The notes beneath the pieces are model-generated. The model did no database searches, was not told where the DNA came from, and saw only the letters and a list, made by a program, of their open reading frames with translations. Made by a program: the position numbers and the translations under genes. A DNA stretch of 64,000 nucleotides, taken from positions 62,001-126,000 of the IMG/VR virus record IMGVR_UViG_3300044568_003163. One strand, 5' to 3'. Positions 8,874 to 58,168 of this stretch are shown one piece after another (within the stretch, counting starts at the first letter, position 1; every line of letters begins with the position of its first letter).

Positions 8874-8945
8874 TGGAGCTACCGGGATTCGAACCCGGAA
8901 TAACAGAGTGCAAGTCTATCGTGATGCCAATTTCACTATAGCCCC
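8874..8945 (-). tRNA. tRNA-Ala(TGC)
   Basis: GGGGCTA acceptor with G3:U70; loop CTTGCAC. Confidence 0.9.
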
Positions 8946-8955
8946 ATTAAATTTG

Positions 8956-9030
8956 TAGGAGATGACGGAATCGAACCGACGACCTTTTGCGTGTAAAACA
9001 AACGCTCTAAACCAACTGAGCTAATCTCCT
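8956..9030 (-). tRNA. tRNA-Val(TAC)
   Basis: TTTGT-TTTACAC-GCAAA. Confidence 0.9.
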
Positions 9031-9036
9031 AAATTG

Positions 9037-9110
9037 TAGGTAATATGAGACTCGAACTCATAACCTCCTCGGTATCAGCGAGGTGCTCTAACCAATTGAG
9101 CTAACTACCT
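9037..9110 (-). tRNA. tRNA-Ile(GAT)
   Basis: CCTCG-CTGATAC-CGAGG. Confidence 0.9.
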
Positions 9111-9117
9111 GTGGCAG

Positions 9118-9188
9118 CACGAATGGAAGGATTCGAACCTTCATCGACGGTTTTGGAGACCGGCATGCTACCATTGCACCACACTCGT
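9118..9188 (-). tRNA. tRNA-Trp(CCA)
   Basis: CGGT-CTCCAAA-ACCG. Confidence 0.9.
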
Positions 9189-9195
9189 ATTTTAG

Positions 9196-9268
9196 TGGTA
9201 AGGGACGGGATCGAACCGTCATCATCGGATTTTCAGTCCGCTGCATAGACCAACTTTGCTACCTCACC
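9196..9268 (-). tRNA. tRNA-Phe(GAA)
   Basis: CGGA-CTGAAAA-TCCG. Confidence 0.9.
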
Positions 9269-9274
9269 AAAAAC

Positions 9275-9308
9275 AAAAAACCTCTGAATTTTTGAAGATT
9301 CAGAGGTT
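9275..9308 (-). terminator. attenuator terminator 3
   Basis: AACCTCTGAAT...ATTCAGAGGTTTTTT just upstream of tRNA-Phe. Confidence 0.85.
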
Positions 9309-9335
9309 AAAGTATATTGTATTAAAATATCGATA

Positions 9336-9434
9336 CTACATCCGAATCACATTGCTATCCACATAATCATTCCCGGCAAACTTAATCGCCCAGTCAAAAT
9401 TCATGTTAATATTTATGTTAGTAGTAGGTATCAT
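9336..9434 (-). CDS. putative attenuator leader peptide 3 (MIPTTNININMNFDWAIKFAGNDYVDSNVIRM)
   Basis: Lies between promoter and terminator; composition matches the downstream tRNA block. Confidence 0.75.
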   Translation of the reverse strand: MIPTTNININMNFDWAIKFAGNDYVDSNVIRM

Positions 9435-9469
9435 TTTATTGATGTTTTAATATTGTTTTATATATACTG

Positions 9470-9497
9470 TTATATGTTCTAAATTTCAAAAAGTTTC
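9470..9497 (-). promoter_or_regulatory. class II promoter GAAAC-N16-CATATAA
   Basis: Exact motif. Confidence 0.7.
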
Positions 9498-9526
9498 AAC
9501 TTATTTTTATATTATTTTAATCTTAG

Positions 9527-10090
9527 TTAGTCCCACCAAGAATCATATTCTTTAGCGAAGATTTCCATTGCTAAAGCAAAGTCTTTACTTCTATTCAAAT
9601 GAGCAATTTTCATACCCATTATGTATTCTTTGTTCTTTTTTCTCAGCTGAGCAGGTGTATATCGCTCATCATTCCTATCCATCAATCTGTGGCAATCTGG
9701 ACGATCTTCGCAAGGAATAGTATAGTAATCTGACTTACCCCATTTAGCGTCATGCTTTTCTCTATATGGCTCGTCGTAGTTATCTTCATGCACTTTCGTT
9801 AATAACTCTAAACATTCAGTCATCGTTCGAATTTGCTTTTCGCGATTCTCATCGACTGTATGGCCATGGTCTTTAACGTATTTGATATGAGCTTTCAACT
9901 TAAAAAGAATTGGTTCCATAATGTAATGGTTATCCCAATCTCTATCTCGCCATACAATAGGCATCCATCGAATTATATTCTTAATTCCTCTCACAAAATC
10001 CTTGGAAGGAATCTTGACGTATTCCTTCCAATAAAATTTTGCATTGTCTACCGCTTCTTCAACGTAGAACTTAATTCGTTCGTTTATCAT
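9527..10090 (-). CDS. conserved phage hypothetical protein
   Basis: W.DRDWD motif and terminal WWD seen in large phages. Confidence 0.65.
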   Translation of the reverse strand: MINERIKFYVEEAVDNAKFYWKEYVKIPSKDFVRGIKNIIRWMPIVWRDRDWDNHYIMEPILFKLKAHIKYVKDHGHTVDENREKQIRTMTECLELLTKVHEDNYDEPYREKHDAKWGKSDYYTIPCEDRPDCHRLMDRNDERYTPAQLRKKNKEYIMGMKIAHLNRSKDFALAMEIFAKEYDSWWD

Positions 10091-10104
10091 ATTGATGTTA
10101 TTGA

Positions 10105-11421
10105 TTAACCTTCAGCTTCTTCGGTATCAATTACTCCAGAATCTTTTACGATTCCTTCAAGTACTTTGAATTCGAAAGACTTGAATTTGAATGTTTTGTT
10201 TACCAAACCACCTTCAATTCTTACACAAACTCCTTCTTTGATATGTCTAGTATCTAAGATAGATGGACCAGTTCCGAATGTTTCGACGGTGTTGCTGAAA
10301 TATTCTCGCAAATCTCTATCATCGAATTTATGAGTGATTGCTTCTAATTCGTTTAAGGTTATCGTAGCAACATGTGGTACAGTTTTTACACCTAATTCAT
10401 TACAACGTTTTACAACATCATTCCAAGCATAATCGATAGATTGACCATCTTCATTAGCAAATGTCATACGGTAAACATAAACCTCAGATTGAGTAGGTTC
10501 ACAACCATAAGAATAAGCCATAGACTTACCGTATTGTTTCGTAAACTCTTTATCACCCATTTTGGTTGTATCAACAGATGGCATAATTGCAGCTCCTGTA
10601 GATTCGTAACCTACAATTTCAAAATAAACGGTTTCACCTTTTCTTAAGTTACCTTTGAATAAGTTCATTGCTTTATCTCGGATGGTTGGGTCATGGAATT
10701 GATTTGCGGATTTTGATTCTCCTAAAACAACTCTACGAGTACCATTCAAATAAGCCCATTCTTTGTCGTTGATAGCTAATCCAAATTTAGTAACAAGTTT
10801 TTCTAACCAACCTAATTCTCTAGTCATTTGAACGTGACCAATACGACCTGAAGTACCGTGAAGTTTTTCAGTAATAATGATGTGTTGACCCTTTTCAAAT
10901 TCGTGGATACTCTTACCAAAGTGTCCGGTATCAAAATGTTCTTTGAACATTACAGAAGATCTAGAAACTCGGGTTTTCTTACCTTGATTTTCTCTAGCAA
11001 TTTTAGCCGTATTTGGATTTACATATTTGTTACAGATAGGTACACCTTTCCATTCGTCAAATTCAAATCCTTCTACATCTAAACCAGTTACCATAATGAA
11101 TCCAAAGTAATGTAATGGAACCCAGAAACCATCAGAGATTTCACCTCTAAATTTTTGAGCTCTTACTCTTCGGTTTGCATCGAACATTCCACCTTTCTCA
11201 TCTTTTCTAGCATTTAACTCGGCATCACGATAAAGGTTGTTTGCTTTACAGAACTCATCGGATAACTGACCATCAGATGGAAAGTAAACTCCTAAATGTC
11301 CTTCTAAAGAATCTAAACCAATTACTACTTGATTACCGTGACAAGTTGCTAATTGAACTTTGTCTGCGTTAGGATGTGGTCTCACGTTTGTCAACCTAGT
11401 GACGATTGCATTGTATGCCAT
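10105..11421 (-). CDS. RNA ligase (DRB0094/Rnl2-like with N-terminal OB-like domain)
   Basis: HPNADK, TEKLHGTS adenylation motif, EGVCVR, FKFKS. Confidence 0.85.
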   Translation of the reverse strand: MAYNAIVTRLTNVRPHPNADKVQLATCHGNQVVIGLDSLEGHLGVYFPSDGQLSDEFCKANNLYRDAELNARKDEKGGMFDANRRVRAQKFRGEISDGFWVPLHYFGFIMVTGLDVEGFEFDEWKGVPICNKYVNPNTAKIARENQGKKTRVSRSSVMFKEHFDTGHFGKSIHEFEKGQHIIITEKLHGTSGRIGHVQMTRELGWLEKLVTKFGLAINDKEWAYLNGTRRVVLGESKSANQFHDPTIRDKAMNLFKGNLRKGETVYFEIVGYESTGAAIMPSVDTTKMGDKEFTKQYGKSMAYSYGCEPTQSEVYVYRMTFANEDGQSIDYAWNDVVKRCNELGVKTVPHVATITLNELEAITHKFDDRDLREYFSNTVETFGTGPSILDTRHIKEGVCVRIEGGLVNKTFKFKSFEFKVLEGIVKDSGVIDTEEAEG

Positions 11422-11445
11422 GATTTCGTATTTTTAATTTATAAG

Positions 11446-11503
11446 ACAAATATAATCAATGTCTTCGACACTTGAAAATAATTTCTCATTAAGTTATTAA
11501 CAA
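11446..11503 (-). promoter_or_regulatory. class I promoter cassette
   Basis: TATATTTG at 11447-11454, box at 11493; offset 46. Confidence 0.75.
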
Positions 11504-11507
11504 TTAG

Positions 11508-11618
11508 TAGTCAGAACAGGATTCGAACCTGTATGGTGTTACCTAGAGTACTCAATACAGAGCGGTAAATCGGTTACGAACCATTACTCTTAGCGTCTTC
11601 CAATTCCGCCACCTGACT
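11508..11618 (-). ncRNA. tRNA-like RNA (Leu-like D arm) with expanded anticodon domain
   Basis: Intact acceptor, D and T arms; AGAGTA/TACTCT stem encloses ~35 nt. Confidence 0.65.
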
Positions 11619-44913: not shown

Positions 44914-46527
44914 CTAGGATTTAGCAAGAGTTTCTTTCTTTGCTAATGCAATTCCTATTTTCTTTCCTTCTTCAACATCTGAAGGATAATGAACTCCTGA
45001 TAGGATTCTTGAGTTACCTATTTTATCAGCCAATTCACTCAATGAATTAGCTAAATGAGGATATTTGTTTGCTAACATACAAGCCATATAATGAGCACCA
45101 CATGAATGCCCAGAAGGAAACGAATATGTGTTTGATGTAGTTCCACTTAAAGGAACTATGTTATGAGACATATATGGTCTAAGTCTTTGCCAAGCAACTT
45201 TCATGTTATTCACTAATTCAATATTGCCGTCATGCTTCCATAAGTCTTTTAATTCTTTCATTGAAGGTTTTTCTCCTCTGATGGTTAACCATTGATAGAA
45301 AAGTTCAGGTGGCGAATCATTTGCAGCAAGTGCAAATTTTTTATCTTCTTCGGTAGCTCTCTTCATTTCACTCTTAACTAATCCAATTTCATGATTATCT
45401 TCGATTGTAAGATTTCCAGCTGGTGGCATTTTACCTAAGAAGTTATGATGTAAGGTGTTTGAAATTTCTTCTGGCAAAAATGAATAATCAGCACCAACAC
45501 CCGGTGCATCAGTAGCCCATTCTTCGTTTATGCTTTCAAATAGAGGAGTTTCTTCTAATGCAATAAGTAAACCTATTCCATCTTTAGCCATCTTCCAATG
45601 AAATCCCGGTTTTATGTTATCTTTTATCAATTCAACATAAACTCTACCTCTCTTATTTAATTTACCTTCTTCGGTTTCTTCTCCAGGAGAATCAGCACCT
45701 ACAAAATAAACTGTAACTGAAGGATGGAGATTTAGATACTCTTCGATGATAGCTTGGATAGTAGAAAAAACTTTACTAACCTCAGTCATAGAAGATAATC
45801 CATTACCAGCAGATTTTAATTTATCAGATTCAAAGAAACATAAAGTAGATTTTAAAGCTAACGCATTAAACTTAACGATGTAATGGTCGCTTGAACCTGA
45901 AAATTGAACTCTGGAATTACCATGATTACTAGCTATAATAGTCCATGGATATTTAAAATCAGTAAGCTTTCTTTCGTTTAAAGAATTTTTAGTATTTGCC
46001 ATGTAATTCAATCTCATTCCTTTAGGAATGCCTTGATAAACTCCTTCGTTCTTTTTAAGGAATTTATTTTCACAATAATTTACCCATTTAGAGAATATGT
46101 CAATAGGAGTTCGATGGCCATTATTTTCGTAGTTTTGATAGAATGTACCTATTCCGTGTTTTAGGAAATATATGTTACTTTCTTTAGGGACTATGTCATC
46201 GTCGTTTCTACCAAATACTATGGTATTGACTGCACGTTTAGTTCCCATTCTAACTATTGGGTCGAATGATCGACTATGGACTGCCGGATTAAAAAGTAAT
46301 GTAGGTATTCCGGTTAATGTGCCTATGCAATAAGCAAACCAACCACCCATAGAAGAACCTATTAGGAGATCGATTTTATTTTTCTTAACTTCGGCTAAGG
46401 TTTTTTCGAAAAGTCCGTTGTCGTGATAGTCCATTGGTGGATCGTAAACATAATCAAACTTTTCTAAGAATTCGTTTTTGTCAGTTTTAGGTGAGGACTC
46501 AAGTCCATGGAAGAATGCAACTCGCAT
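44914..46527 (-). CDS. fusion: YqiA-like esterase + unknown domain + PAP2 phosphatase
   Basis: HGLES and GSSMGG; K....RLRP, SFPSGH, SRILSGVHYPSD. Confidence 0.8.
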   Translation of the reverse strand: MRVAFFHGLESSPKTDKNEFLEKFDYVYDPPMDYHDNGLFEKTLAEVKKNKIDLLIGSSMGGWFAYCIGTLTGIPTLLFNPAVHSRSFDPIVRMGTKRAVNTIVFGRNDDDIVPKESNIYFLKHGIGTFYQNYENNGHRTPIDIFSKWVNYCENKFLKKNEGVYQGIPKGMRLNYMANTKNSLNERKLTDFKYPWTIIASNHGNSRVQFSGSSDHYIVKFNALALKSTLCFFESDKLKSAGNGLSSMTEVSKVFSTIQAIIEEYLNLHPSVTVYFVGADSPGEETEEGKLNKRGRVYVELIKDNIKPGFHWKMAKDGIGLLIALEETPLFESINEEWATDAPGVGADYSFLPEEISNTLHHNFLGKMPPAGNLTIEDNHEIGLVKSEMKRATEEDKKFALAANDSPPELFYQWLTIRGEKPSMKELKDLWKHDGNIELVNNMKVAWQRLRPYMSHNIVPLSGTTSNTYSFPSGHSCGAHYMACMLANKYPHLANSLSELADKIGNSRILSGVHYPSDVEEGKKIGIALAKKETLAKS

Positions 46528-46603
46528 AAGTGGTATTTATTTATAGTACAAATATAATCATTTTCCTATTCAATAGGAAATTAAATTGAATTAATTATTA
46601 ACA

Positions 46604-47197
46604 TTATGCTCTTGGTCGTCCTAACATAATTTTGTCGTGAGCTCCACCAGCAATATTTCTAGTGTACCAACCATCACCAGAAGCATCTGGCATAGTACCA
46701 ATCCATTGAACTTGTTTACCTAAAACTTTAGTAACTACATCAATATCAGTTACTACTGGCACATCATATTTGTTGATTAAGATTTCCGCGATTTTACCAG
46801 AAACTTCGATATAGAATCCCATCTTTTTAAGGTCGACTCCTCTAGCTTCAATGTAAGCACGTTTAGCATCTTTGGTTCCGTCATGTCCTACTCCTGAGAA
46901 TTTAACTCCAAATTTAGTTCTTTGACCAAACATTACCATATCAAAATCTCTGGTTCCGTGAATATCTTCACCTTCCCAATAATTCCAATCTGGATCTGCA
47001 AACACATCTTCAGGAGATTTTATTTTAATGTGACCTCCAATTTCGGCATATGCCGTTTGTATCAAATCGAAAAATTCTCCAGCTAATTCTGGATATTTCT
47101 TATGATTGAATAGTAAAGCCTTTCCTCTTGGTGGTTTTAAATCACCAGAAGAAGTTATTTCGTTTACGTACTCTTCGTATTTTTTAAATGTTGTCAT
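46604..47197 (-). CDS. CTS-like-peptide protein, unknown domain
   Basis: MTTFKKYEEYVNE; resembles the next gene. Confidence 0.65.
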   Translation of the reverse strand: MTTFKKYEEYVNEITSSGDLKPPRGKALLFNHKKYPELAGEFFDLIQTAYAEIGGHIKIKSPEDVFADPDWNYWEGEDIHGTRDFDMVMFGQRTKFGVKFSGVGHDGTKDAKRAYIEARGVDLKKMGFYIEVSGKIAEILINKYDVPVVTDIDVVTKVLGKQVQWIGTMPDASGDGWYTRNIAGGAHDKIMLGRPRA

Positions 47198-47751
47198 TTT
47201 AATTTACCGTATATTCGTTTTGTAATTCGTTTTCCTGCTTTTGAAAGAAATCTAGAGTAATATCCGTCTTCTTCCATTTGTGGTTGTTTATGCTTACCTA
47301 CAATATTTTGAATTACTTCAAAATCATCTACTACTGGAACTTTAGAATCCACTAAGATTTCTTCCATTCTTTTCGATGCTTCGATAAACCAACCTTTAGT
47401 ATTTACTAAGTCAATAACTTTCGTTATCAATTCTCGTTTAGCACCTTTCTTTTCGTTAGTACCTAATAGAGCAATCTTGTTTCCATAAGCAGTTTCCTTA
47501 TAAATAATGAATGCATCTGGTTTGTGATCGGAATCTACGTCTTTTAGATAAGTAGCTTTATATTTCGTCTTTAATTCATGAGCATCATCAGCAGAAAAAT
47601 CTAGACCTTCTTTAGAATATGTATCGGTGTACATTTTCCAAATTAAGTCTTCTGCCTCTTTATCTAATTTAGACATATCAATATTAACCCACTTACCAGT
47701 AGGAATCGACATTTCACTTACAAATTCGTTATATTTTTTAAATTGTGTCAT
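47194..47751 (-). CDS. CTS-like-peptide protein, apparent paralog of 46604
   Basis: MTQFKKYNEFVSE; shares G.(F/Y)IE.S, VPVV.D and DG.Y.R. Confidence 0.65.
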   Translation of the reverse strand: MTQFKKYNEFVSEMSIPTGKWVNIDMSKLDKEAEDLIWKMYTDTYSKEGLDFSADDAHELKTKYKATYLKDVDSDHKPDAFIIYKETAYGNKIALLGTNEKKGAKRELITKVIDLVNTKGWFIEASKRMEEILVDSKVPVVDDFEVIQNIVGKHKQPQMEEDGYYSRFLSKAGKRITKRIYGKLK

Positions 47752-48218
47752 TTTATTAGTTTTACCGATTTTTTAGGTTCAATTACAACTACATTAGTTG
47801 TACGTATATATTTGTTTCCTTTTACTGGATGACTTCCGGCATCCATAATATTTTGAAAGACTATTCCATCAAAACCTTTATCTATAGCTGCTCTAACAAA
47901 ATGGTCAGTCTTTATAGATTTAATTTCAGGATTTGGTTTGTATCTATCGAAATCTTCGGGTTTCATTCCTAATTTTTTAGCTTCGGCTTTTGCAGCTATC
48001 TCAGGTAACCACCAACCTTCAGCTGAACTAAAATCTAAAGTAACAAATTTCTTAAGGATGATTTGATATGGTCCAGTAACCTTTCCGTAAGATTGTGCTA
48101 TTAATAAACTATCAGTAAAATATATTGGTTTGTTAAAATCTACATCTCCACCATGATACATCAAATCAAATTTTTCTGATTCGTTTAAGAACTCGTCATA
48201 TTTTTTAAATGTCGTCAT
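47748..48218 (-). CDS. CTS-like-peptide protein, ADP-ribosyltransferase-like
   Basis: MYHGG, IYFTDS..A..YG, GFDGIV. Confidence 0.6.
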   Translation of the reverse strand: MTTFKKYDEFLNESEKFDLMYHGGDVDFNKPIYFTDSLLIAQSYGKVTGPYQIILKKFVTLDFSSAEGWWLPEIAAKAEAKKLGMKPEDFDRYKPNPEIKSIKTDHFVRAAIDKGFDGIVFQNIMDAGSHPVKGNKYIRTTNVVVIEPKKSVKLIK

Positions 48219-48610
48219 TAATCTCCAGTTCCTTTGTATATTATTTTAATTGCCTTAGCAGGAATATTTTCAAATGTAATTATACGTTTGTCTTTCAAAT
48301 CAAAATTTGGATCTACGTACCATATATTCTTAAGATTAGTTGTATCTATTTGATAGATGTCATCATCATAAGTTGAATCCCACCAATCTTTCTTATTATC
48401 ACTATTAACTGCAAATATAACTTTGCCATCAATATTGGTGTCAGATAACCAAGTCTCACTTTTACCTTTAGTAATCAATCCTTCTTTAGAAATAATATTT
48501 CTATAATGAGGATTTGATGTATGATATAAGTATCTGTTTGGTTTTACTTCAATTAAGCGAGAATTAGCACTTTCATTTATCCATTTTTCGTATAGAGGCA
48601 AATTTCTCAT
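48218..48610 (-). CDS. CTS-like-peptide protein, ART/Tpt1-like
   Basis: YLYHTS....I.KEGL, IF, IP...I. Confidence 0.55.
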   Translation of the reverse strand: MRNLPLYEKWINESANSRLIEVKPNRYLYHTSNPHYRNIISKEGLITKGKSETWLSDTNIDGKVIFAVNSDNKKDWWDSTYDDDIYQIDTTNLKNIWYVDPNFDLKDKRIITFENIPAKAIKIIYKGTGD

Positions 48611-49008
48611 ATCTTTGCTTTAAGTATTTTCATATTAATAGCCTTGTCTCCTTTTATGATTTGTGATGCTATTCGATGATGTCCATCAAAAACGATTACT
48701 GTTCCATTTTTAAATTGTACACCAGTAGGCATTTCGGTCTTTTTACTTTTTGAATATAAATTAACCGTAGTTGAATTCAAATAATCTTGATTTGGAACTA
48801 TTTTGTTTATGTCTATAGATAAAGTTTTAGCTTTATCGAATGCCTTAATTTTTAAATTTGCGTTATCCTCTTCATCGTATCCTAATTCAGATCTCCAAAA
48901 ATCCTTCATATCTAAATATGAATCCGTAGTCATCTTTTGTTTGAATACGTTTAACAATTTCGTATTATCCTCATTAAGCCAGTCTTCATATATAGGCAAA
49001 TTTCTCAT
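48607..49008 (-). CDS. CTS-like-peptide protein, ParB/sulfiredoxin-like
   Basis: I.P.Q, VFDGHHR. Confidence 0.7.
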   Translation of the reverse strand: MRNLPIYEDWLNEDNTKLLNVFKQKMTTDSYLDMKDFWRSELGYDEEDNANLKIKAFDKAKTLSIDINKIVPNQDYLNSTTVNLYSKSKKTEMPTGVQFKNGTVIVFDGHHRIASQIIKGDKAINMKILKAKI

Positions 49009-50090
49009 TACAGAAGATTCTTTTTAGCTCTTTTTATATATTCGGTAACTAAACCTCGGATTTTGTTCATTGCCGCTATTGCAGCCGGAGTTTCAGCCTT
49101 ATTGAATTTAGGAGAGTTATAAGCTTCCATCATTCCTTTCTCATATTGTTTTACTACTGCCTGCATAAATTCTTTTGCCGACTTATATTTTAAAACAGTA
49201 CCAAATTCTCCTATTTGTTCAAGAGTATCAGCCACCGCTAATATTCCATCACACAAATCATCAAATGTAGGAGAATCAGGATTAACACCTTTCCATTGTT
49301 GTAATGATTCAGAAGGCACAAAAGGCTTTCCAGGATTAGATTGGTCCCAAAAGAATCTAGCAATATCCATCATAAAAGTAGACGAACTTAAAGTAATTAA
49401 TCGATCTTCAACATTTGAACGTTTAGAATAAGGCACCATTAAATCACCTTGAAATCTTGCTCTAATTCCTCTTGGTTGTATTGAAATTTCTAAAGCCTCA
49501 CCGAATGACGAGTATAACTTACCAATTACAAATCCTTTAACGTTTTTCTCTGGAGTAAAACGGAAAACTGCCCATGATGAATATTCTTTATGAGTTACCA
49601 CTAAGTCCACTTGCACATAACCTATTTCACCAGTTCTTAAAGGAACTGTTACTAATAATTTTAGAGATGCATCAGTAGAAATAGATTTTGTTTCTTCTAC
49701 GTCTATACCTTCAGGTGTTTCAGCTTCTAGCCACATTAGCAGCTCTTGATTATACAATTTAACAGTAGCAATCTCATCAGCTCGTGGATCTTTACTTGTA
49801 AGTTTAAGTACCGGATATGCGATCATGTAATCTACATCTCCGTATAATTTTTCAGGTTGATTTTTTAAATCATCTTCCCACCAAGTACCAGATCCTATAG
49901 GCTTCAAAAAGTCTAAAGATGGTAATTCCAATTCTCGTAAATGTCCATTGAAATCTTCGGAAATCCTAGCTACGACCTTCGTTACTTTTTGGATAACGTC
50001 TGGAGTTAAAGGAGTTTCCTGAGTTTTAGTAGTTGACCAACCGCCTTCGTTGATAGTCAACCATTCGTTATATAGTTGTAAGTTTCTCAT
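49008..50090 (-). CDS. CTS-like-peptide protein, nucleotidyltransferase-like
   Basis: IGSG...GDVD...VQVDL. Confidence 0.65.
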   Translation of the reverse strand: MRNLQLYNEWLTINEGGWSTTKTQETPLTPDVIQKVTKVVARISEDFNGHLRELELPSLDFLKPIGSGTWWEDDLKNQPEKLYGDVDYMIAYPVLKLTSKDPRADEIATVKLYNQELLMWLEAETPEGIDVEETKSISTDASLKLLVTVPLRTGEIGYVQVDLVVTHKEYSSWAVFRFTPEKNVKGFVIGKLYSSFGEALEISIQPRGIRARFQGDLMVPYSKRSNVEDRLITLSSSTFMMDIARFFWDQSNPGKPFVPSESLQQWKGVNPDSPTFDDLCDGILAVADTLEQIGEFGTVLKYKSAKEFMQAVVKQYEKGMMEAYNSPKFNKAETPAAIAAMNKIRGLVTEYIKRAKKNLL

Positions 50091-50097
50091 AATTTTG

Positions 50098-50463
50098 TTA
50101 TTCTATTAACTTTTCTACATAAGTGCAGGTTTCTCCTGCATCAAATCCCTTTTCGATAAGTAGTGATAGTGAGGCCGGTTTACACCAAGCATATACAAGC
50201 CAACCTGAATATTTACTTTGTACGTATTCCCATCGAGTATTCCAAAGTTTTCTAAAGATTCCTTTTCTTCTATGCTCTTCTTGTACCCAGGCATCTAAGA
50301 ATTTAATCTTCTGATCCTTTTCTCTTTCCATATAGATATGGCCTACAATATCACCATTTATCATTGCAATCCAAGTTTCTAATTGCTGGGCATTGCTCTT
50401 TAGGTGAATTATTTTTATATCTTCTATAAAAGAATTCGATACTTCATTCAAAACATTACTCAT
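50098..50463 (-). CDS. GNAT acetyltransferase
   Basis: V.EEHRRKGI, KGF. Confidence 0.75.
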   Translation of the reverse strand: MSNVLNEVSNSFIEDIKIIHLKSNAQQLETWIAMINGDIVGHIYMEREKDQKIKFLDAWVQEEHRRKGIFRKLWNTRWEYVQSKYSGWLVYAWCKPASLSLLIEKGFDAGETCTYVEKLIE

Positions 50464-50479
50464 TATATTTATAAGTTTC

Positions 50480-50776
50480 TCATATTGCAGGTAAAGACAA
50501 ATCTAATGTTTCTGGTATGTGTTTATATTTGTTGTAAACGTTATTAGACACTATGTAGGATTTGATAAATCTTTCCATTTCTGCAATACTACCAAAGGTA
50601 TGACCTCCGAAATCGATATCAATTCCTTTATAAAATGGAGTATAATTTGCAACAGTACGACCAGCTTGTTTTTGCTCTCTTTGTTTTTTCCAAATAATTC
50701 CGTCATTACCTTTTACTTCATCTGGCCATTTAGTAGATTCGTTAAGAAACTCGTCGTATTTTTTAAATTGTGTCAT
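50480..50776 (-). CDS. CTS-like-peptide hypothetical protein
   Basis: MTQFKKYDEFLNE. Confidence 0.65.
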   Translation of the reverse strand: MTQFKKYDEFLNESTKWPDEVKGNDGIIWKKQREQKQAGRTVANYTPFYKGIDIDFGGHTFGSIAEMERFIKSYIVSNNVYNKYKHIPETLDLSLPAI

Positions 50777-50777
50777 A

Positions 50778-51521
50778 TTATTTAGTATTTCTTTTTAACC
50801 ACTGATTAAATGATTCGGTTATTTTAGTTAGGGTTGCTTTATACGTAGCCTTAAAATCTTTTGGTTCTTGAATATAACCTTCGGCAGTTTCGTCATGTAA
50901 ATCAGAAGTCCATTGCCAATGAAAACATAATTCATTAGGCACATCAAATCCATAAAATTTAAGGACTTGCTTTTGTTTTTCTAATTCCGTACCGCCATTC
51001 CAATTGTGACCAGTTAAAACAATACCAGCTAATTTACCTTCTAAAATATTATTTTCTTCTAGGGTAGTCCATCGATTTTCTAACCAATTTAAGCGTTCGA
51101 TTAGTTTTTGATAGACTGCGTTAACTGAACCCCATCGAATCGAACCTAAAAATATAACGGCATCAGCTTCTAATAAAGGTTTGCTCACTTTCCAAAGTTC
51201 ATCGTCTTTGTGATTAATAGAAGCCCAACAACGATGACATCCACTCGGATTTTTAGTTGCATCTTTTAGTATGGAATCTTTTACTCCACATGAATTTCCT
51301 TTTGAAGTAGAAACATTACCTTCGCATTGATAGATGTGCAATTTAGTAACGTCGACAATTTCGCAAGTAGATGAACCTAATTCATCTTGAATCATTTGTG
51401 CCAATTGAGAGGACTTAGGAATATCATCACTACCTTCCCATCGAGTCGATGTGGTAAGTAGGAGTACCTTCTTTCCTCTGAGATGAGTGGTCAATCTTTG
51501 TAAATCGTGGTTGCTATTCAT
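50778..51521 (-). CDS. flavodoxin/NADPH-dependent FMN reductase-like
   Basis: TSTR, C.GN, ADAVIF.GSIRWG....QKLIERL. Confidence 0.8.
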   Translation of the reverse strand: MNSNHDLQRLTTHLRGKKVLLLTTSTRWEGSDDIPKSSQLAQMIQDELGSSTCEIVDVTKLHIYQCEGNVSTSKGNSCGVKDSILKDATKNPSGCHRCWASINHKDDELWKVSKPLLEADAVIFLGSIRWGSVNAVYQKLIERLNWLENRWTTLEENNILEGKLAGIVLTGHNWNGGTELEKQKQVLKFYGFDVPNELCFHWQWTSDLHDETAEGYIQEPKDFKATYKATLTKITESFNQWLKRNTK

Positions 51522-51522
51522 A

Positions 51523-52173
51523 TTATTTAGATGTCCAAACTACTCCACCACCACCATCTTCGATATGGAATTTAGCTTTTGGATATTTTCTTTTCATGTC
51601 TTCGTATTTAGCCGGAATCAAGTCTCGGATTTTAATGTCATTTGATTGACCAACTACCTTTCCATATTCTAAAGCAACAATAGACCAAGGTCCGTTATCA
51701 CCAGTTTTTACGCCTTTCATCATCACTGCCCAAACTCCTTCGTTAACAACAGATTCGTTACGCATATCTGCTAGATATGCATCGGTTAAATCGGTTATTA
51801 GGTCTAGCAATTCGTTTTTCTTATTAATATTTAACCCGGCCATATCGATAATATCATCGATTTCCTTTGCAACCTCTTTTACCTCTTTATCAGAGTTTCT
51901 ATAATAATCGGTTAGAGACATTGCCTCATTAATAGAAGATTCATTATAAGGAATTACTCCTAATTTTTGATCGGCTTTAGCGATCATATCCTCTACCTTT
52001 TTACAAGCAGATTGAATGCCTTTTAAAGCAACAATCCATTTAGGAGCTGATATGTCCTTCTTTAATAGCTCATCGATTTTATCTTGAAGGTTAGTTATGT
52101 CACTCCCAATTTCATCAAAAATAAAATATTGACCTTCGTTTAAGAATTCTTCGTATGTTTGTAAGTTTTTCAT
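51523..52173 (-). CDS. CTS-like-peptide multi-segment protein
   Basis: MKNLQTYEEFLNE plus internal NESSINE and NESVVNE. Confidence 0.65.
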   Translation of the reverse strand: MKNLQTYEEFLNEGQYFIFDEIGSDITNLQDKIDELLKKDISAPKWIVALKGIQSACKKVEDMIAKADQKLGVIPYNESSINEAMSLTDYYRNSDKEVKEVAKEIDDIIDMAGLNINKKNELLDLITDLTDAYLADMRNESVVNEGVWAVMMKGVKTGDNGPWSIVALEYGKVVGQSNDIKIRDLIPAKYEDMKRKYPKAKFHIEDGGGGVVWTSK

Positions 52174-52571
52174 TATTTGTAATTTTTATTTAAGTACCAA
52201 TTAATATCCTCTTTAGCATAACCTAAAAGCTCGCCAATTCTTTTGCTCTCCTGTTTAGTAGCCTCATATGATAAATATCCGCCATATTTATTAGCAATCT
52301 TTGCTAATTCTTTAGCTTTTTTCTCGGCACCTTTATTAAAATAAATATAAGCGTCGAATGGATTTCCTGGTAATTTGATTGTTCCTAAGTTGTGAGTCTT
52401 AACCAAATCCCAAAATTCATCTATACTTAAATCAACTGTGGTTTTTAAAGTAATAAATCCTAAATCTCTCTTTCCGTCTATAACAGTTTGTACCGCACTT
52501 TTATCTCGGTGGGCTTCTTCTGCCTTAATAGTTTCGTTTACGAATTCGTCGTATGTAGGAATGTGTTTCAT
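52173..52571 (-). CDS. CTS-like-peptide hypothetical protein
   Basis: MKHIPTYDEFVNE; IGELLGY. Confidence 0.65.
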   Translation of the reverse strand: MKHIPTYDEFVNETIKAEEAHRDKSAVQTVIDGKRDLGFITLKTTVDLSIDEFWDLVKTHNLGTIKLPGNPFDAYIYFNKGAEKKAKELAKIANKYGGYLSYEATKQESKRIGELLGYAKEDINWYLNKNYK

Positions 52572-53110
52572 TATATTTTTCCGGCTTTTACTCTATCTCT
52601 AGAAACGCTGTTGATGTATTTTAATTCATCTGCATTTAGTTTAGGAGCAATTAGTTTTTTCCATTGACCTTCTTGTTTAGCTCTTGGTAATTGCAAAAAT
52701 TCAATAACGTCTTGGTCATCTTTTAACTTGCTAATTATCGATTGGACTGCTTTATCTCGCCAATGTTCTTTCCACCACATTTTCAAATCATCAACTGGGT
52801 GAAAATCTACTCTATTAGCTAACAGTGCAATTTGTCCTCCAATTGCAGCAGCCTGTAACATAAGGATTGCAGTCATTGCATCTTCATTTAAGAATTCTTC
52901 GGATTCTTTTAAATATCCTTCGTCACTCCAACCAGCTATAAAAGAGATATCTCCTTTTGCTCGGCCTTCTAAAAATTTCACCTTTGTATTTTGATTTTTA
53001 CCTAAATCAATAACTTCAAATTTACCTAATTTAGGGTGAGTGTAAATTTTGCCAACGATAAAATTAGATTTCTCGTTTAAGAATTCCTCGTATGTTTGTA
53101 AGTTTCTCAT
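52571..53110 (-). CDS. CTS-like-peptide two-segment protein
   Basis: MRNLQTYEEFLNE; internal ESEEFLNE. Confidence 0.65.
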   Translation of the reverse strand: MRNLQTYEEFLNEKSNFIVGKIYTHPKLGKFEVIDLGKNQNTKVKFLEGRAKGDISFIAGWSDEGYLKESEEFLNEDAMTAILMLQAAAIGGQIALLANRVDFHPVDDLKMWWKEHWRDKAVQSIISKLKDDQDVIEFLQLPRAKQEGQWKKLIAPKLNADELKYINSVSRDRVKAGKI

Positions 53111-53244
53111 TATCTTCCTTGTCCTTTGTATTTTTTAGGCTTTTCTTCTTTAGGCCCAAAGTGTTTTTTGGCTTTGCCAGTACTCTTCGTTTTAGTTATC
53201 TTAACCGAAGTAGTTGTAGTTGATTTGCTTTTAGTAGCGGCCAT
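53110..53244 (-). CDS. 44-aa highly basic peptide (not in ORF track)
   Basis: MAATKSKSTTTTSVKITKTKSTGKAKKHFGPKEEKPKKYKGQGR; stop overlaps the next start. Confidence 0.65.
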   Translation of the reverse strand: MAATKSKSTTTTSVKITKTKSTGKAKKHFGPKEEKPKKYKGQGR

Positions 53245-53385
53245 GGTGTTACATGATATTTTTATTTTTGCGTTTTATTCATTTAGAGTTCACCAGATAA
53301 ACGATTTACTGGTGTTATAATACCTACTAACCAGAGAACAATTTTTAAACGTGGATTACACGATTTCTCTTACTAATCAGTGGTT

Positions 53386-53802
53386 TTATTGTATGTCTTC
53401 TTTTCTGTATTCTGGTGCAATTGTTGCAGCCGGTAATTGAGTAGCTAAATCAGTCGTACCTTCATTAACCGTAGCCTTATAACCAAATTTTGATCGTAAA
53501 GCTTTAATTGCGGCAATAGCCTTTGCTTCATCTTCGAAGGAGTCGTCCATAAAAATAGAAATTTGTTCAGGTGCTAAATCTTCAGCACCGTTTTTCATTT
53601 TTAAAGGCGATATAGTAACATTAACAATAGCGGCAAAGTTATTTCTCATTGTTCCCGCAACTCCACCCTCAACAACTACACATTGATTTTCATCGAAGTG
53701 TAGTGCGTCTTTCCAACATGATTTCCATGTCTTATTAGCCGGAGTAGCTGATTGAAATTTAGCACCATCAGCTAAAAATTCGTTTAGAGATTCATGTAAC
53801 AT
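53386..53802 (-). CDS. CTS-like-peptide hypothetical protein
   Basis: MLHESLNEFL. Confidence 0.6.
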   Translation of the reverse strand: MLHESLNEFLADGAKFQSATPANKTWKSCWKDALHFDENQCVVVEGGVAGTMRNNFAAIVNVTISPLKMKNGAEDLAPEQISIFMDDSFEDEAKAIAAIKALRSKFGYKATVNEGTTDLATQLPAATIAPEYRKEDIQ

Positions 53803-53805
53803 AAT

Positions 53806-54141
53806 CTATTTAGGTGACCATTCTTTTTTGTCAAAATCTTCGATGTTTAACATGGCTTGTATCGACTTTTCAAAATGAATATTTACTCGACCCCAAAAAA
53901 ATCCAGTAGTAGGAGCAAATTCCGTATTCCAAAATTTACGATCTCTCAATCTATCCAAACAATCTTTTGTAACTCCTTTTGGATCGTCATAGACGATATT
54001 AAGATAGCCATTTACATCCTCAGTTCTAAACTTAATTTTACTAGAAAATCCATGTAAAGCTTGTAAGATGTCAATTAAATCATTTGCAGTTCCTCTACCT
54101 TCATTTAAGAAAGTTTCTAGTGATTCGTGTAATGAGCTCAT
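53806..54141 (-). CDS. CTS-like-peptide hypothetical protein
   Basis: MSSLHESLETFLNE. Confidence 0.6.
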   Translation of the reverse strand: MSSLHESLETFLNEGRGTANDLIDILQALHGFSSKIKFRTEDVNGYLNIVYDDPKGVTKDCLDRLRDRKFWNTEFAPTTGFFWGRVNIHFEKSIQAMLNIEDFDKKEWSPK

Positions 54142-54635
54142 TATTTGATGTATTTTTTTCTAATAATTTCCTCAGCCTTTTCAATCTCTTTCGGAGACCA
54201 ACCATAGAGCTTACCTATCTCGGTGGCAACCTCTAATGGGTCGTCTGAAGTCTTAAATTGATTGATGTGCATTTTAATGGTTGCATCATTTACCGGTTGT
54301 TTGCTCTCATTTAAGAAGGCTTCAAAGCTTTCCATAAGATTACTTGATTCGCTCACTTCTGCTTCATATACAGTTCCTATTACATCACTAGCATTACTAA
54401 ATTTCTTAATGTGACTACTCACATCCTTTAGCTTTTTGATAATAGCATCTAATTCTTTAGGGTCAACATCATTACCGGAAGTAACTCGATCGGTAAATAC
54501 ATTTAACTTTATGCGAGCTACGAATAGTTCGGTTTTGACTACATCTTTCGGTAATCGATAGAAAGTTCCTTCGTTCATAATATTATTTCTTGCTCCAAAG
54601 TAAATCTGAAAAATCCGAGTACATGTACTTGTCAA
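54141..54635 (-). CDS. multi-segment hypothetical protein
   Basis: Likely start MNEG near 54578; internal LMESFEAFLNE. Confidence 0.6.
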   Translation of the reverse strand: MTSTCTRIFQIYFGARNNIMNEGTFYRLPKDVVKTELFVARIKLNVFTDRVTSGNDVDPKELDAIIKKLKDVSSHIKKFSNASDVIGTVYEAEVSESSNLMESFEAFLNESKQPVNDATIKMHINQFKTSDDPLEVATEIGKLYGWSPKEIEKAEEIIRKKYIK

Positions 54636-54963
54636 TTAGAGAATTCTCTAGTTTTTTAAATTTTTGTTGTTGGTCAGCTTTACCTAAATAAGGATTTCCT
54701 TCGGTTTGAAGTTTTATCTGATGAGTTAATTCATGTAAGATAGCTTGTTCCGGATCAACCATTCTCGACAAATCAAATGAGATATAAAGAGCTTGATTTG
54801 TCTTAGCATTGTAAGAAGTACATGCACCACCATGAGCAACCTTTTCAAATTTCAAAGGTAATTCCTTAACTCTCTCAGCTTTACATACCGCAGAATAGTA
54901 AGCCTTAACATTAGCTTGACTAACGGCTTCATTAAGAAACTCTTCTAATGATTCGTGTAACAT
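54583..54963 (-). CDS. CTS-like-peptide protein, HExxH metallopeptidase-like
   Basis: MLHESLEEFLNE; ILHELTH. Confidence 0.6.
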   Translation of the reverse strand: MLHESLEEFLNEAVSQANVKAYYSAVCKAERVKELPLKFEKVAHGGACTSYNAKTNQALYISFDLSRMVDPEQAILHELTHQIKLQTEGNPYLGKADQQQKFKKLENSLIDKYMYSDFSDLLWSKK

Positions 54964-54965
54964 AA

Positions 54966-55169
54966 TTATTTCTTTTGTTCTAAGCCATCACTATAAGCCC
55001 AACGAATAGCTGAAAATACATCAGCAGCTAAAGGAGAATTAAATGTCGAACCTTTCATTGACAACCCGAATTTCTTAAATTGTTTAAATGCCTGAATAGC
55101 ATATTCTCTCGCTTCATCATCACCGGAAGATTCAATTAAATACTCGTCGTATGTTGGTAAGTTTTTCAT
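54966..55169 (-). CDS. CTS-like-peptide small protein
   Basis: MKNLPTYDEYLIE. Confidence 0.6.
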   Translation of the reverse strand: MKNLPTYDEYLIESSGDDEAREYAIQAFKQFKKFGLSMKGSTFNSPLAADVFSAIRWAYSDGLEQKK

Positions 55170-55715: not shown

Positions 55716-56096
55716 TTAAGATGAGCAAGCGGTGTAGTACATGATACAAATAACAACCGCATGTAAGAATTGGTCGAATCCAAATAAAATCCAATGCCAT
55801 TTAGAGGCTGGAGATTGTACAATTGGAAACCATACATTCATCCGACCTTTCCATAAGTCAATCAGAAAATGCGATAACAATTGAAACATAACCAAATTAA
55901 ACCAAAGGGCGAAGGTCATCTGACCAAATGCTAATACAATAGCCATGAGGGTAGCATGAACGGCAGCATGGGCAAAGATAGGGAGTAGAGGCTTACCGAC
56001 AGCTTTAGCATTAAGCATCCAAGAGGTCGATAACCAAGTAAAGTCAGCTAAAAAGTGACAGAAGAAGAGGGCAATAAGTAAGTAGCAATTATCCAT
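55716..56096 (-). CDS. DUF3307-family membrane protein
   Basis: HFLADF, H...H, SHFLID..K, DQFLH. Confidence 0.85.
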   Translation of the reverse strand: MDNCYLLIALFFCHFLADFTWLSTSWMLNAKAVGKPLLPIFAHAAVHATLMAIVLAFGQMTFALWFNLVMFQLLSHFLIDLWKGRMNVWFPIVQSPASKWHWILFGFDQFLHAVVICIMYYTACSS

Positions 56097-56116
56097 AGAG
56101 TATTAATTTATAGTAA

Positions 56117-56144
56117 TTATATGAAGGCGCCGCGGATGAGTTTC
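56117..56144 (-). promoter_or_regulatory. class II promoter GAAAC-N16-CATATAA
   Basis: Exact motif, 20 nt upstream of the DUF3307 start. Confidence 0.7.
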
Positions 56145-56149
56145 GAGGG

Positions 56150-57075
56150 CCACTCGAATTCCCTGAAAAAAATTTTATGACAGTGATTTTAGGCCGAAAG
56201 TTTAACCAGTGTTAGGGTTGGGCTTTAGCCGGCCACAGATCTATTTCCAGAGCGAAAAGTGCCTGGAATTGCATGCCCACAGGGCCCGGCACAAATCCTC
56301 CGCGTCATTAACGCAACTCAGGGATCCTATGACCTGAGGCCTTTCTAGCTTCTCAAAAAGTCACCTCGGGAAAAGTTGATAGCTAGGTCACTTTCTCCAC
56401 TCTCTTCGACCTCGAGCTCTCTTAGGCTACTCGCCACCTTCTCTACCCTAATCCTCCCTTCTACTCCCTCAAGGTGTAGCACCTCTACTCTCCTACCCTA
56501 CTTCTACTCTTAAGGCTACCTACCTCTCTACCCCTCTACTCTCTTAGACCTTCCTCTACTAGCTACTACACTCTTATTGCCTATTTGCCTTTCTACTACG
56601 CTACGCTTACTCTATAAAGAGAGCCTACCTATACGTATGTAATGCACTCTATACGAGAGCCTCTATCTAGTGTGTAGTGTTAGGTAGTTATAACAGGTGA
56701 AGGTGGCAAGGGTAGGGAGTGATGTAGGAGTACGTACACTAGGGTGGTGGTAGAGCCTCGCTACCCTACGAGTGTTGTGGACTGGTAAGGTTAGAAGGCT
56801 GCTGACTGGTACGTACCTGAGTGGCTACCTGTCTGGTACGTGTCTGAGGTGACTGCCAGGGTCAACCTGGGTGGTCCTAGACAGTCCCTGGGATGACCTA
56901 GGAGTGGTCCTGGAGGTACGTACCTGGAGTACGTGTCTAGAAGTGGTCCTAGAGTGGTCCCTGGAGAAAGTTAATATATGGCCGTCTCGGAATGAACCTG
57001 GAGAAAGCCACTAAACCCCTCAAAGGCCATATATATTTGACTATATATGGCCTAAGATTCGATCAAATTAAAAAA
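56150..57075. other. GC-rich non-coding region with a strand-skew switch
   Basis: No ORF of 60 aa or more; C/T-rich half then G-rich half; short repeats. Confidence 0.7.
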
Positions 57076-57079
57076 TCAC

Positions 57080-58168
57080 TTAGAATGGTTGATTTAGGAC
57101 CAAATTAGCGGTATCAAAGTTTTTGGCAAGTATATCACCTGCAACCATTTGTAAGTGTGTATCAGAATTGGCTTTTTTCTCAAAGCCATAATTATGTGAT
57201 GCGAAATCAGTTACTCCATTAATGACATCCCATACTGAAACTCCTGTTCTTAGATTAGCCTTTTGTTTGGCATTTAACTTAGTAGTATCTAAATTAGCAC
57301 CATGTATTCTATTATATGTGTTTTTATGGCCTTTGAAAAACATCTCTAACTCATTTTGTTGGATATTAGAGTTATTAAGGAGTAAATTAGCACCTTGCTC
57401 TAGCTCTAATAGTGAGGCAGGAGTATTAATAGCTTCAATAACCTTTTGGTTAAATGCGGTAGGTACGAAATTCATTTTTTCGATACGTTCCATATGCTCA
57501 TAAAATTCTTGCCATGTTCTTGCATCCATACTACGAAGATTGAAGGACTCATCGAATGCTCTTAAGACATTACCATTTGTACATACTAGACGGTCCATAT
57601 AAGGGTCAGCCTGGAGTCCATTTGCCGTTCTGGCCAAAGATATACCAGTTTGAAATACCTCATTGGATAGGTTTTCCACTTGGTGTTGATTACCTTGACC
57701 ATTAATTGCTCTTATATAGATATTACCATTTCCTTTATTGAAATCGGTTGAGGTAATTTCCAAATTATGAGTATTGGCTAGACGTTCGAAAGTATCAAAG
57801 TATGTTTCAGCAGAGATAATGGCTGAAGCACCTTCTTTTTGTATACGTGAGATAATACGATCGGGTGTAACTGCTATAGTTACTTGCATAGACTTGTTTT
57901 GGCCAATTGCATTTTTTAGGGAATTTAAAAACATTTGAGCTCCATCTTCACCTACTGATGAGGTAAGATTTTTTAATCCAGTTGAGGAGAATCCTACTAT
58001 CTGAAGTAAGTCTTTAATAGCTTGTCGGTCGACTCCTAATTTTAGACCATTGAATTCTACTAGGTCCATAGTAATAAATCTTAAATCCGTAAGAGCAATA
58101 GTTTTTCTTAGGGGTTGATTGCGTAGGCTGGTTTCTTTGAAATTAGCGTACTGTGCTTGTGATATCAT
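57080..58168 (-). CDS. DUF932/DUF945-like protein
   Basis: RLVCTNG and WDVINGVT motifs. Confidence 0.7.
   Translation of the reverse strand: MISQAQYANFKETSLRNQPLRKTIALTDLRFITMDLVEFNGLKLGVDRQAIKDLLQIVGFSSTGLKNLTSSVGEDGAQMFLNSLKNAIGQNKSMQVTIAVTPDRIISRIQKEGASAIISAETYFDTFERLANTHNLEITSTDFNKGNGNIYIRAINGQGNQHQVENLSNEVFQTGISLARTANGLQADPYMDRLVCTNGNVLRAFDESFNLRSMDARTWQEFYEHMERIEKMNFVPTAFNQKVIEAINTPASLLELEQGANLLLNNSNIQQNELEMFFKGHKNTYNRIHGANLDTTKLNAKQKANLRTGVSVWDVINGVTDFASHNYGFEKKANSDTHLQMVAGDILAKNFDTANLVLNQPF

Follow-up and report, generated by a model that had tools for sequence, protein, structure and literature searches.

The 64,000-nucleotide stretch of DNA analysed here as a whole (the window; positions 62,001 to 126,000 of IMG/VR virus record IMGVR_UViG_3300044568_003163) is carried by a single viral contig of 294,034 bp with a GC content of 32.8%. 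On the minus strand of the window, positions 44914 to 55169 hold an array of 19 tandem open reading frames (ORFs), tightly packed (median spacer, a few bases) with frequent ATGA or TAATG overlaps, and 15 to 16 of them carry the same kind of short peptide, here called the leader, of the general form M-x2-[IL]-x2-[FY]-x-[ED]-[FWY]-[LIV]-N-E. The original prediction made from this DNA was that about 16 diverse proteins of the array share a peptide resembling a capsid-targeting signal. The shared peptide was confirmed and the count stood, while the scope proved too narrow: the family is genome-wide, with about 50 genes, and clade-wide.

Eleven leaders of the array follow the tighter form M-[KRT]-[NTH]-[LIF]-x-[TK]-[YF]-[ED]-[ED]-[FWY]-[LVI]-N-E and score 17.7-26.4 bits on a position-specific scoring matrix (PSSM) of the leader; they start at window positions 55169, 54963, 53110, 52571, 52173, 50776, 49008 (the ParB-like protein), 48610, 48218, 47751 and 47197. 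An additional copy, MESFEAFLNE, lies at an in-frame ATG at 54335 within the ORF at 54141-54578, which encodes a two-part precursor unless the gene really starts at this internal ATG. Visible variants below the scoring threshold are found in three further ORFs (MSSLHESLETFLNE, start 54141; MLHESLNEFLAD, start 53802; MRNLQLYNEWLTINE, start 50090), and the N-terminus of the GNAT ORF is reduced to MSNVLNE. The ORFs that lack an N-terminal leader encode an FMN reductase, a 537-residue esterase-PAP2 fusion and a 44-residue basic peptide. In the list below, a slash marks the predicted cleavage site, leader positions are numbered back from the terminal Glu (P1), bits refer to the PSSM unless stated otherwise, ART stands for ADP-ribosyltransferase, and G1 and G2 are two relatives of the phage with capsid proteins 74-77% identical to its own.

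54966-55169, minus strand: ORF of 67 residues, first gene of the array; leader MKNLPTYDEYLIE/S, 20.0 bits
54583-54963, minus strand: SprT/M78-like zincin candidate, 126 residues; leader MLHESLEEFLNE/A, 23.2 bits; HExxH motif (HELTH); Atlas 0.90-0.92
54141-54578, minus strand: ORF of 145 residues starting MNE; internal leader MESFEAFLNE/S at residues 82-91, 23.1 bits
53806-54141, minus strand: ORF of 111 residues; leader variant MSSLHESLETFLNE/G; DNA repeat family D7
53386-53802, minus strand: ORF of 138 residues; leader variant MLHESLNEFLAD/G with Asp for Glu at P1; homologue in G2
53110-53244, minus strand: Lys-rich basic ORF of 44 residues, leaderless; stop codon overlaps the ATG of the next gene
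52571-53110, minus strand: ORF of 179 residues; leader MRNLQTYEEFLNE/K and second copy EEFLNE/D at residue 76; 26.3 and 11.4 bits
52173-52571, minus strand: ORF of 132 residues; leader MKHIPTYDEFVNE/T; G1 homologue 70% identical
51523-52173, minus strand: ORF of 216 residues; leader MKNLQTYEEFLNE/G; two internal [LIV]NE sites ending at residues 83 and 145
50778-51521, minus strand: NADPH-dependent FMN reductase/flavodoxin-like protein, 247 residues, leaderless; conserved in G1 and G2
50480-50776, minus strand: ORF of 98 residues; leader MTQFKKYDEFLNE/S, 26.4 bits
50464-50484, minus strand: truncated leader start ATG AGA AAC TTA TAA (M-R-N-L-stop); DNA repeat family D5, 90% identity
50098-50463, minus strand: GNAT acetyltransferase, 121 residues, MSNVLNE only; Acetyltransf_1, 26.2 bits against a Pfam cut-off of 20.7
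49008-50090, minus strand: candidate Pol-beta-type nucleotidyltransferase (NTase), 360 residues; leader MRNLQLYNEWLTINE/G; G1 homologue 62% identical
48607-49008, minus strand: ParB/Srx-like protein, 133 residues, DGHHR motif; leader MRNLPIYEDWLNE/D; ParB_N cluster 0.94
48218-48610, minus strand: predicted Tpt1/KptA-type ART-fold protein, 130 residues; leader MRNLPLYEKWINE/S; fold at residues 18-128
47748-48218, minus strand: probable ART-PolyVal family ADP-ribosyltransferase, 156 residues; leader MTTFKKYDEFLNE/S; homologues match PF18760
47194-47751, minus strand: ORF of 185 residues; leader MTQFKKYNEFVSE/M; paralogue of the gene at 46604-47197; homologue in G1
46604-47197, minus strand: ORF of 197 residues; leader MTTFKKYEEYVNE/I; homologue in G2
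44914-46527, minus strand: UPF0227 esterase (N-terminal) fused to PAP2 phosphatase (C-terminal), 537 residues, leaderless; [LIV]NE sites ending at residues 185 and 335

The leader in the phage genome and its relatives

The recurrence of the leader beyond chance was confirmed across the whole genome. A fixed regular expression gave 46 matches, all on the coding strand and 41 of them adjoining a start Met, and a six-frame scan with the leader PSSM at 12 bits or more gave 54 matches compared to 3 in reversed sequences. The PSSM was trained on the same genes; the regular expression and a degenerate DNA pattern for [FY]-x-[ED]-F-[LIV]-N-E, which gave 30 matches against 0 for the reversed pattern, are checks independent of it. 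Leader genes account for 47 of 431 genes in a crude gene set and for 8.6% of all residues, or for about 52 genes once non-ATG and internal starts are included, and they are grouped in about seven clusters, of which the array in the window is one. Among the 47 leaders, P4 (F/W/Y), P3 (L/I/V) and P1 (E) are each kept in 47/47, P7 (F/Y) in 45/47, and P2 is Asn in 42/47, within a peptide that is acidic and amphipathic. The claim that unrelated domains stand behind the shared peptide was borne out, in that the 47 proteins fall into 45 BLASTP families once the leader is removed and an hhalign comparison of the profiles of two cargo families gave an alignment confined to the leader.

The phage itself is real and widespread in freshwater. 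The array is 100% identical across 21 kb in two other IMG/VR assemblies and is present in at least 24 lake-water metagenome runs, and an IMG/VR search with the NTase returned two 100%-identical copies of the same phage and nothing else; megablast of the array against cultured phages gave no match. The capsid protein is of the gp23 type (Pfam Gp23, E = 2.4e-36). Its closest named relative is that of the uncultured 462-kb phage LR756500 (56% identity), followed by those of Prevotella Lak phages (36%) and of Tenacibaculum phage pT24 and Chryseobacterium phage MA9V-1 (34%), and these nearest capsid-protein relatives make a Bacteroidota host likely.

The leader is also found in the relatives. G1 and G2 have 27 and 24 tagged genes, respectively, with the same leader logo; 15/47 tagged genes of our phage have a homologue in G1 and 14/47 in G2, compared to 166/384 and 158/384 of its other genes. 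Relatives of 430-460 kb gave 9-10 pattern matches versus 1 in controls. The 130-residue cargo of the array has 284 metagenomic homologues in which the domain is 68-90% identical and the leader diverges into dialects such as MRYIKLYESFLN and MKDLKQFIKTTIREFLNE, and in one dialect lineage unrelated neighbouring genes share the lineage's own dialect (MKWLRKFELFKES, MKYLKKYISFKES and others). In other words, the leader tracks the phage and not the cargo. The cultured phage MA9V-1 (OR050627.1) has about six short leaders of the form MK.FF[IV]NE/A (e.g. at 122538, 126205, 95824, 106131, 154509 and 176213), two of them in the head module; its capsid protein carries WSEFINE/A, its protease-scaffold fusion has 1347 residues, and the MA9V-1 paper presents virion proteins as an SDS gel only. 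One relaxed DNA pattern gave 41 matches in our phage, 5 in T4 and 0-3 in five other T4-type phages (147-229 kb). MA9V-1, pT24 and Lak-B6 were at control level. In this form, the leader is restricted to the closer clade, with a shorter dialect in MA9V-1. The N-terminal matches in T4 are three: ipII, ipIII and the hypothetical gp61.1, a protein of 54 residues (AF158101, 18966-19130) that starts MKTFKEFIKE, like the capsid-targeting sequence of IPII and IPIII.

Third codon positions at identical leader residues agree in 56% of pairs, where codon usage alone predicts 39-77%, and the DNA upstream of leader genes is not conserved. Because third-position identity is no higher than codon usage predicts and the upstream DNA is unconserved, selection on the leader acts at the level of the peptide, with synonymous sites randomised. 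The Tyr and Phe codons of the leader favour C-ending forms (TAC 15/19; TTC 24/40 at P4; genome about 30%), and the phage encodes a tRNA-Tyr(GTA) and a tRNA-Phe(GAA).

Comparison of related loci points to gain and loss of cassettes at the leaders. The array is syntenic with loci in G1 and G2, with the flanks kept and the FMN reductase, the NTase and a few ORFs in common; both ART-fold genes and the ParB, GNAT, zincin and PAP2-fusion genes are found only in our phage. The DNA repeat families of the array coincide exactly with the leader-coding 5' ends (61-90% identity), adjacent leaders being up to 84-90% identical in DNA. When contigs of four lake metagenomes were compared with window positions 46601-52600 for breakpoints, a lake strain of ~97% identity had two joints at which exactly the ParB and GNAT cassettes are missing. 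The joint from 48610 to 49008 drops the ParB cassette precisely between two start codons, whose leaders have their first 15 nt in common, and the joint from 50078 to 50472 drops the GNAT cassette inside a microhomology of 13 nt. One edge of the GNAT cassette is the truncated leader start at 50464-50484, which repeats the NTase leader over its first 12-13 nt; because this truncated duplicate precedes the GNAT gene, the latter is without a proper leader. Several lake contigs match up to position 52135, the last leader base of the 216-residue ORF, and then diverge. Each joint is backed by one metagenomic contig, and the evidence that leaders are exchange points for cassettes is good but not conclusive. 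The same idea was reportedly proposed by Repoila et al. in 1994 for the internal-protein loci of T-even phages.

The deletions and homology breaks within leader-coding DNA, the close DNA identity of neighbouring leaders and the A-rich upstream regions devoid of a Shine-Dalgarno motif would also be expected if the repeated 5' end were mainly a DNA or RNA element, i.e. a recombination joint or the translation-initiation region of a non-Shine-Dalgarno host, and the peptide had no function. We consider this explanation very improbable: residues are fixed while synonymous positions vary to the extent that codon usage predicts, the L/I/V residue at P3 is encoded by nine different codons, the invariant residues lie at codons 7-13 and away from the start codon, and the same peptide logo recurs in genomes that share only 55-77% identity in the capsid protein.

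Likeness to the T4 capsid-targeting sequence

The original prediction likened the leader to MKTYQEFIAE, the capsid-targeting sequence (CTS) of T4 internal proteins (IPs), and this reading stands in every part that sequence alone can test, the likeness extending to the residues that matter in T4. In the T4 record, IPII and IPIII both begin MKTYQEFIAE/A. This ten-residue peptide suffices for packaging, and mutagenesis assigned residues 4 and 7 (Y4, F7) to targeting and residues 8 and 10 (I8, E10) to processing (PMC9026906, a review of Black's work). The protease gp21 cleaves after L/I-x-E, and Asp in place of the processing-site Glu blocks processing while targeting is kept (PMC9026906). T4 residues 4, 7, 8 and 10 align to P7, P4, P3 and P1, the four most conserved positions of the leader, and the end of the leader is always [LIV]-x-E, i.e. 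the gp21 cleavage motif; one leader gene outside the window reads MKKLPTYEEFIAE. The leader of the ORF at 53386-53802 ends in FLAD, with Asp and not Glu, and by the T4 Asp precedent its protein might be packaged uncut.

A gp21-type prohead protease with a matching specificity, the only such protease in the genome, is encoded in the head module. It matches Peptidase_S77 (PF03420, 49.9 bits), its protease domain is 28% identical to T4 gp21 (E = 3e-13), and its GELDHP and ISSRAAG motifs align with the catalytic His and Ser motifs of gp21. The protein has 637 residues, the protease being fused to a helical scaffold region of ~440 residues that bears eight [LIV]NE sites. The head module has the order portal, protease-scaffold, capsid protein and contains seven leader genes, one of them between protease and capsid protein. 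The capsid protein begins MYLINE/Q, and its relatives keep x-[LF]-INE/[AS]. In the AlphaFold model of the 130-residue cargo, residues 1-16, i.e. the leader, are alone disordered, with residue 18 as the first of the fold match. Complex prediction with the 637-residue protease-scaffold and leader residues 1-30 gave a score of 0.00, which counts neither for nor against binding.

A conserved N-terminal extension could also be an address or switch for another destination, such as export, a membrane or an intracellular compartment, or it could be a degron or a zymogen lock that holds toxic enzymes inactive until cleavage. However, the leader is neither Sec-like nor lipoprotein-like in its acidic and amphipathic character, the sole protease of matching specificity is fused to the scaffold, the capsid protein and its head-module neighbours have the same site, and the leader fits the experimentally defined T4 capsid address residue for residue. 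Another destination is, therefore, quite improbable. Based on these data, we suggest that the leader targets proteins to the capsid and is a propeptide like that of the T4 internal proteins, and we put the probability of this reading at roughly three in four. In the best reading of the system as a whole, it would be a modular T4-type internal-protein/CTS system that is greatly expanded (more than ten-fold) and built of exchangeable cassettes of leader plus cargo.

Several observations weigh against a capsid-targeting propeptide of this type. Fifty packaged species would far exceed any documented T4-type phage, the near-invariant Asn at P2 is absent from the T4 rule, and three array genes lack the leader. 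No late-promoter signal was assignable (TATAAATA, 11 matches versus 11.3 expected), and a scan for sigma-70 promoters and terminators did no better than shuffled controls. Finally, the relaxed DNA pattern is not enriched in pT24 and Lak-B6, which are more distant jumbo phages of Bacteroidota. Because pT24 and Lak are without the pattern, the T4 likeness may reflect convergence on one protease specificity rather than shared ancestry.

Other searches bearing on late expression and the head were uninformative. Analysis of k-mer enrichment upstream of leader genes suffered from the median spacer of 3 nt, a search with PF17634 (T4 gp67) gave no match in the genome and none in its own controls, and no virion proteomics for the phage or MA9V-1 was found in the literature. 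Copies of TATAAATA, the T4 late-promoter word, are present at window positions 46538-46545 and 50466-50473 (minus strand), just upstream of the leaderless PAP2 and GNAT genes; the count in the window is that expected by chance, and the copy at 50466-50473 belongs to the truncated leader remnant.

Cargo proteins and their expected fate

The cargo identities proposed from the sequence are supported to varying degrees. The GNAT assignment passes the Pfam cut-off. Of the two proteins described as ART-like, the 156-residue protein scores 20.2 bits against ART-PolyVal (PF18760), below the cut-off of 31.2, while 16/19 of its close homologues match the family (best E = 2.9e-8); its single-sequence AlphaFold model had a predicted local distance difference test (pLDDT) score of 40 and was unusable. 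For the 130-residue cargo, a model built from a 50-sequence alignment (pLDDT 79) was compared with known structures using Foldseek, and residues 18-128 matched the NAD-binding ART lobe of Tpt1/KptA with a probability of 1.00 and a template-modelling score by query of 0.52-0.57. The match covers Tpt1 residues ~88-184, the C-terminal half, so that the N-terminal RNA-binding lobe of Tpt1 is missing from the cargo; classical ART toxins score lower, and the cargo also matches PHROG 5470 (E = 2.5e-4). The predicted structure supports an ART-superfamily domain of the Tpt1/KptA type. The ParB, NTase and HExxH peptidase assignments are supported by motifs and Atlas neighbours: DGHHR and ParB_N neighbours for the 133-residue protein, GS...DVD together with NTase neighbours (Atlas 0.97) and an NTP_transf_2 cluster (0.96) for the 360-residue protein, and clustering with SprT-like and M78 zincins for the HExxH protein. 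PDB sequence searches with the NTase, the ART and the profile of the 130-residue family gave spurious or weak matches only, and Pfam searches of the mature cargo parts at E up to 1 added nothing reliable. PADLOC returned nothing relevant, and the anti-defence role suggested for the cargoes is without direct support. In the array, the very Lys- and Thr-rich 44-residue ORF (53110-53244) occupies the sole large gap and could encode a small DNA-binding or internal peptide.

Outside the window, 34 of the 36 tagged proteins have no Pfam family, and one of the 36 has a weak match to the PHROG 'internal head protein' (E = 6e-4). Across the proteome, [LIV]NE occurs 189 times where 86 are expected (2.2-fold), five control tripeptides being near 1.0. 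Past the leader, tagged proteins have 4.09 such sites per 1000 residues and other proteins 1.39, and a second site often lies 2-6 residues past the first. This three-fold enrichment of internal sites, the two to three sites in several array ORFs, the seven tagged genes inside the head module and the scarcity of recognisable domains outside the window are what would be expected if the leader marked assembly scaffolds of the prohead core, which are chopped and expelled before DNA entry, as are T4 gp22, gp67 and gp68, and not effectors. The recognisable enzymes (GNAT, NTase, ParB-like, both ART-fold and HExxH proteins), however, have one [LIV]NE site each, at the leader end, like the retained T4 IPs and Alt, which fits retention rather than degradation. 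Moreover, enzymes make poor sense as throwaway scaffold, and the Lys-rich composition of tagged proteins (10.9% Lys versus 7.8%) resembles that of the DNA-associated T4 internal proteins. We, therefore, regard a scaffold role of the tagged set as unlikely. In the esterase-PAP2 fusion the two sites lie between the domains, and one may speculate that this protein is processed into parts.

If the leader is a capsid-targeting propeptide, the following sequence of events would result. Tagged proteins would be made late in infection. The amphipathic leader, with its hydrophobic residues at P10, P7, P4 and P3, would recruit the cargo to the protease-scaffold core of the prohead, and the shell would close around the tagged proteins. 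The gp21-type prohead protease would then remove the leader after the invariant Glu of [LIV]-N-E, and the mature proteins would remain in the head beside the DNA. At infection, at least the enzymes among them would enter the host. Core binding, cleavage, retention, injection and cargo action in the host are all steps that we infer. As a consequence, an uncommonly large set of enzymes is probably packaged in the phage head and delivered to the host. In this model, the tag would be portable, such that an unrelated gene could become virion cargo by acquiring a leader, and the leader-coding DNA would provide the homology for gain, loss and swap of cassettes.

Further features of the genome lie outside the array. 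In the crude gene set, 423/431 calls are on one strand, and A-rich stretches, with no Shine-Dalgarno motif, precede start codons. An alternative genetic code was rejected, since coding density under table 11 is 93% across the genome and suppressor tRNAs were not seen. Window positions 1593-11618 (minus strand) contain 35-37 tRNA genes in a block; one aragorn call within it (2044-2116) has a four-base anticodon and is a weak tRNA in Rfam too (36 bits). Upstream of the array, GC content climbs to 41.5% at 55716-58168, where a 126-residue membrane-like ORF without homologues in the relatives and a 362-residue ORF kept in both relatives are located. At genome positions 251797-252156 (minus strand), a 119-residue ORF of the head module, kept in the relatives, looks by eye like a gp55-like late sigma factor of T4.

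Comparison with known systems and significance

The design principles of the system are overall similar to those of the T4 internal proteins. As for IPI, IPII and IPIII, a short peptide at the N-terminus, bearing the key residues T-Y-x-E-F-[LI]-x-E and the gp21 end motif [LI]-x-E is attached to unrelated, fast-evolving small proteins, a gp21-type protease is present, and the loci are variable with conserved 5' ends as exchange points. However, about 50 genes are tagged here, compared to 3-4 in T4, the leader has 13 residues with a near-invariant Asn at P2, the cargo includes recognisable enzymes, and the scaffold is fused to the protease. Moreover, this is an uncultured freshwater phage of 294 kb whose nearest cultured relatives infect Bacteroidota and whose capsid protein is distant from gp23. 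T4 Alt, an ART-fold enzyme that is packaged in the head and loses a short N-terminal propeptide to gp21 (PMC9026906), offers a further parallel, although the two ART-fold proteins predicted here are small single domains and not Alt homologues.

The large phages phiKZ, 201phi2-1 and SPN3US pack tens of different proteins, known as inner-body or ejection proteins, many of them cut after Glu by a gp21-related protease, and their propeptides have redundant cleavage sites (PMC9026906). Our phage is similar in size class, protease and redundant after-Glu sites, and would likewise pack tens of proteins. By contrast, cleavage in the phiKZ-type phages occurs at S/A-x-E, and their propeptides are long and non-uniform with no shared portable address. 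In our phage P3 is always L/I/V, which differs from the S/A/G-x-E of gp175-type cleavage, and the head genes are of the gp23/gp21 type.

In encapsulins, a short terminal peptide loads diverse cargo into a shell with the HK97 fold. There, however, the peptide binds the shell directly and is not cleaved off by a maturation protease, and encapsulins neither package DNA nor inject anything. The domain set of the array (ART-PolyVal, GNAT, ParB-like, zincin peptidase and NTase) is that of the polyvalent proteins of phages and conjugative elements, for which delivery with the DNA has been predicted (Iyer et al. 2017, PMC5512222). A polyvalent protein joins two to fifteen effector domains in a single giant chain, whereas here the domains are encoded by separately tagged single genes of 98-360 residues; two Pfam domains occur together only in the 537-residue esterase-PAP2 fusion, a possible exception with its cleavage-type sites between domains. 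In the literature searched, the concept of such a tag is described for T-even phages, and families this large have not been reported for huge phages.

Tentatively, and with somewhat less confidence than doubt, we speculate that a clade of huge freshwater phages has made the T4 capsid address plug-and-play, giving a head-loaded and rapidly changing takeover kit in which the leader DNA doubles as a recombination joint that swaps cassettes between co-occurring phages. The kit would then account for about one gene in nine, or roughly 9% of the proteome, and the sequence of an uncultivated phage would be enough to list the proteins that it injects. Proteins delivered into the host together with phage DNA are active ahead of any phage gene expression. 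The best-known counter-defence and takeover factors, such as T4 IPI and Alt, are among them, and proteins of this kind are normally found only through virion proteomics of cultured phages. In this uncultured lineage the tag appears to label the whole set, so that candidate injected proteins of metagenomic huge phages could be listed from sequence, with MA9V-1 as a possible experimental model. The tagged set would represent a large pool of small proteins and enzymes for screening against bacterial defences, and a natural example of how a portable address, together with recombination at the sequence that encodes it, diversifies the payload of a virion. These observations also suggest that the T4 capsid-targeting rule, which is used in T4 engineering, holds far beyond the T-even phages.

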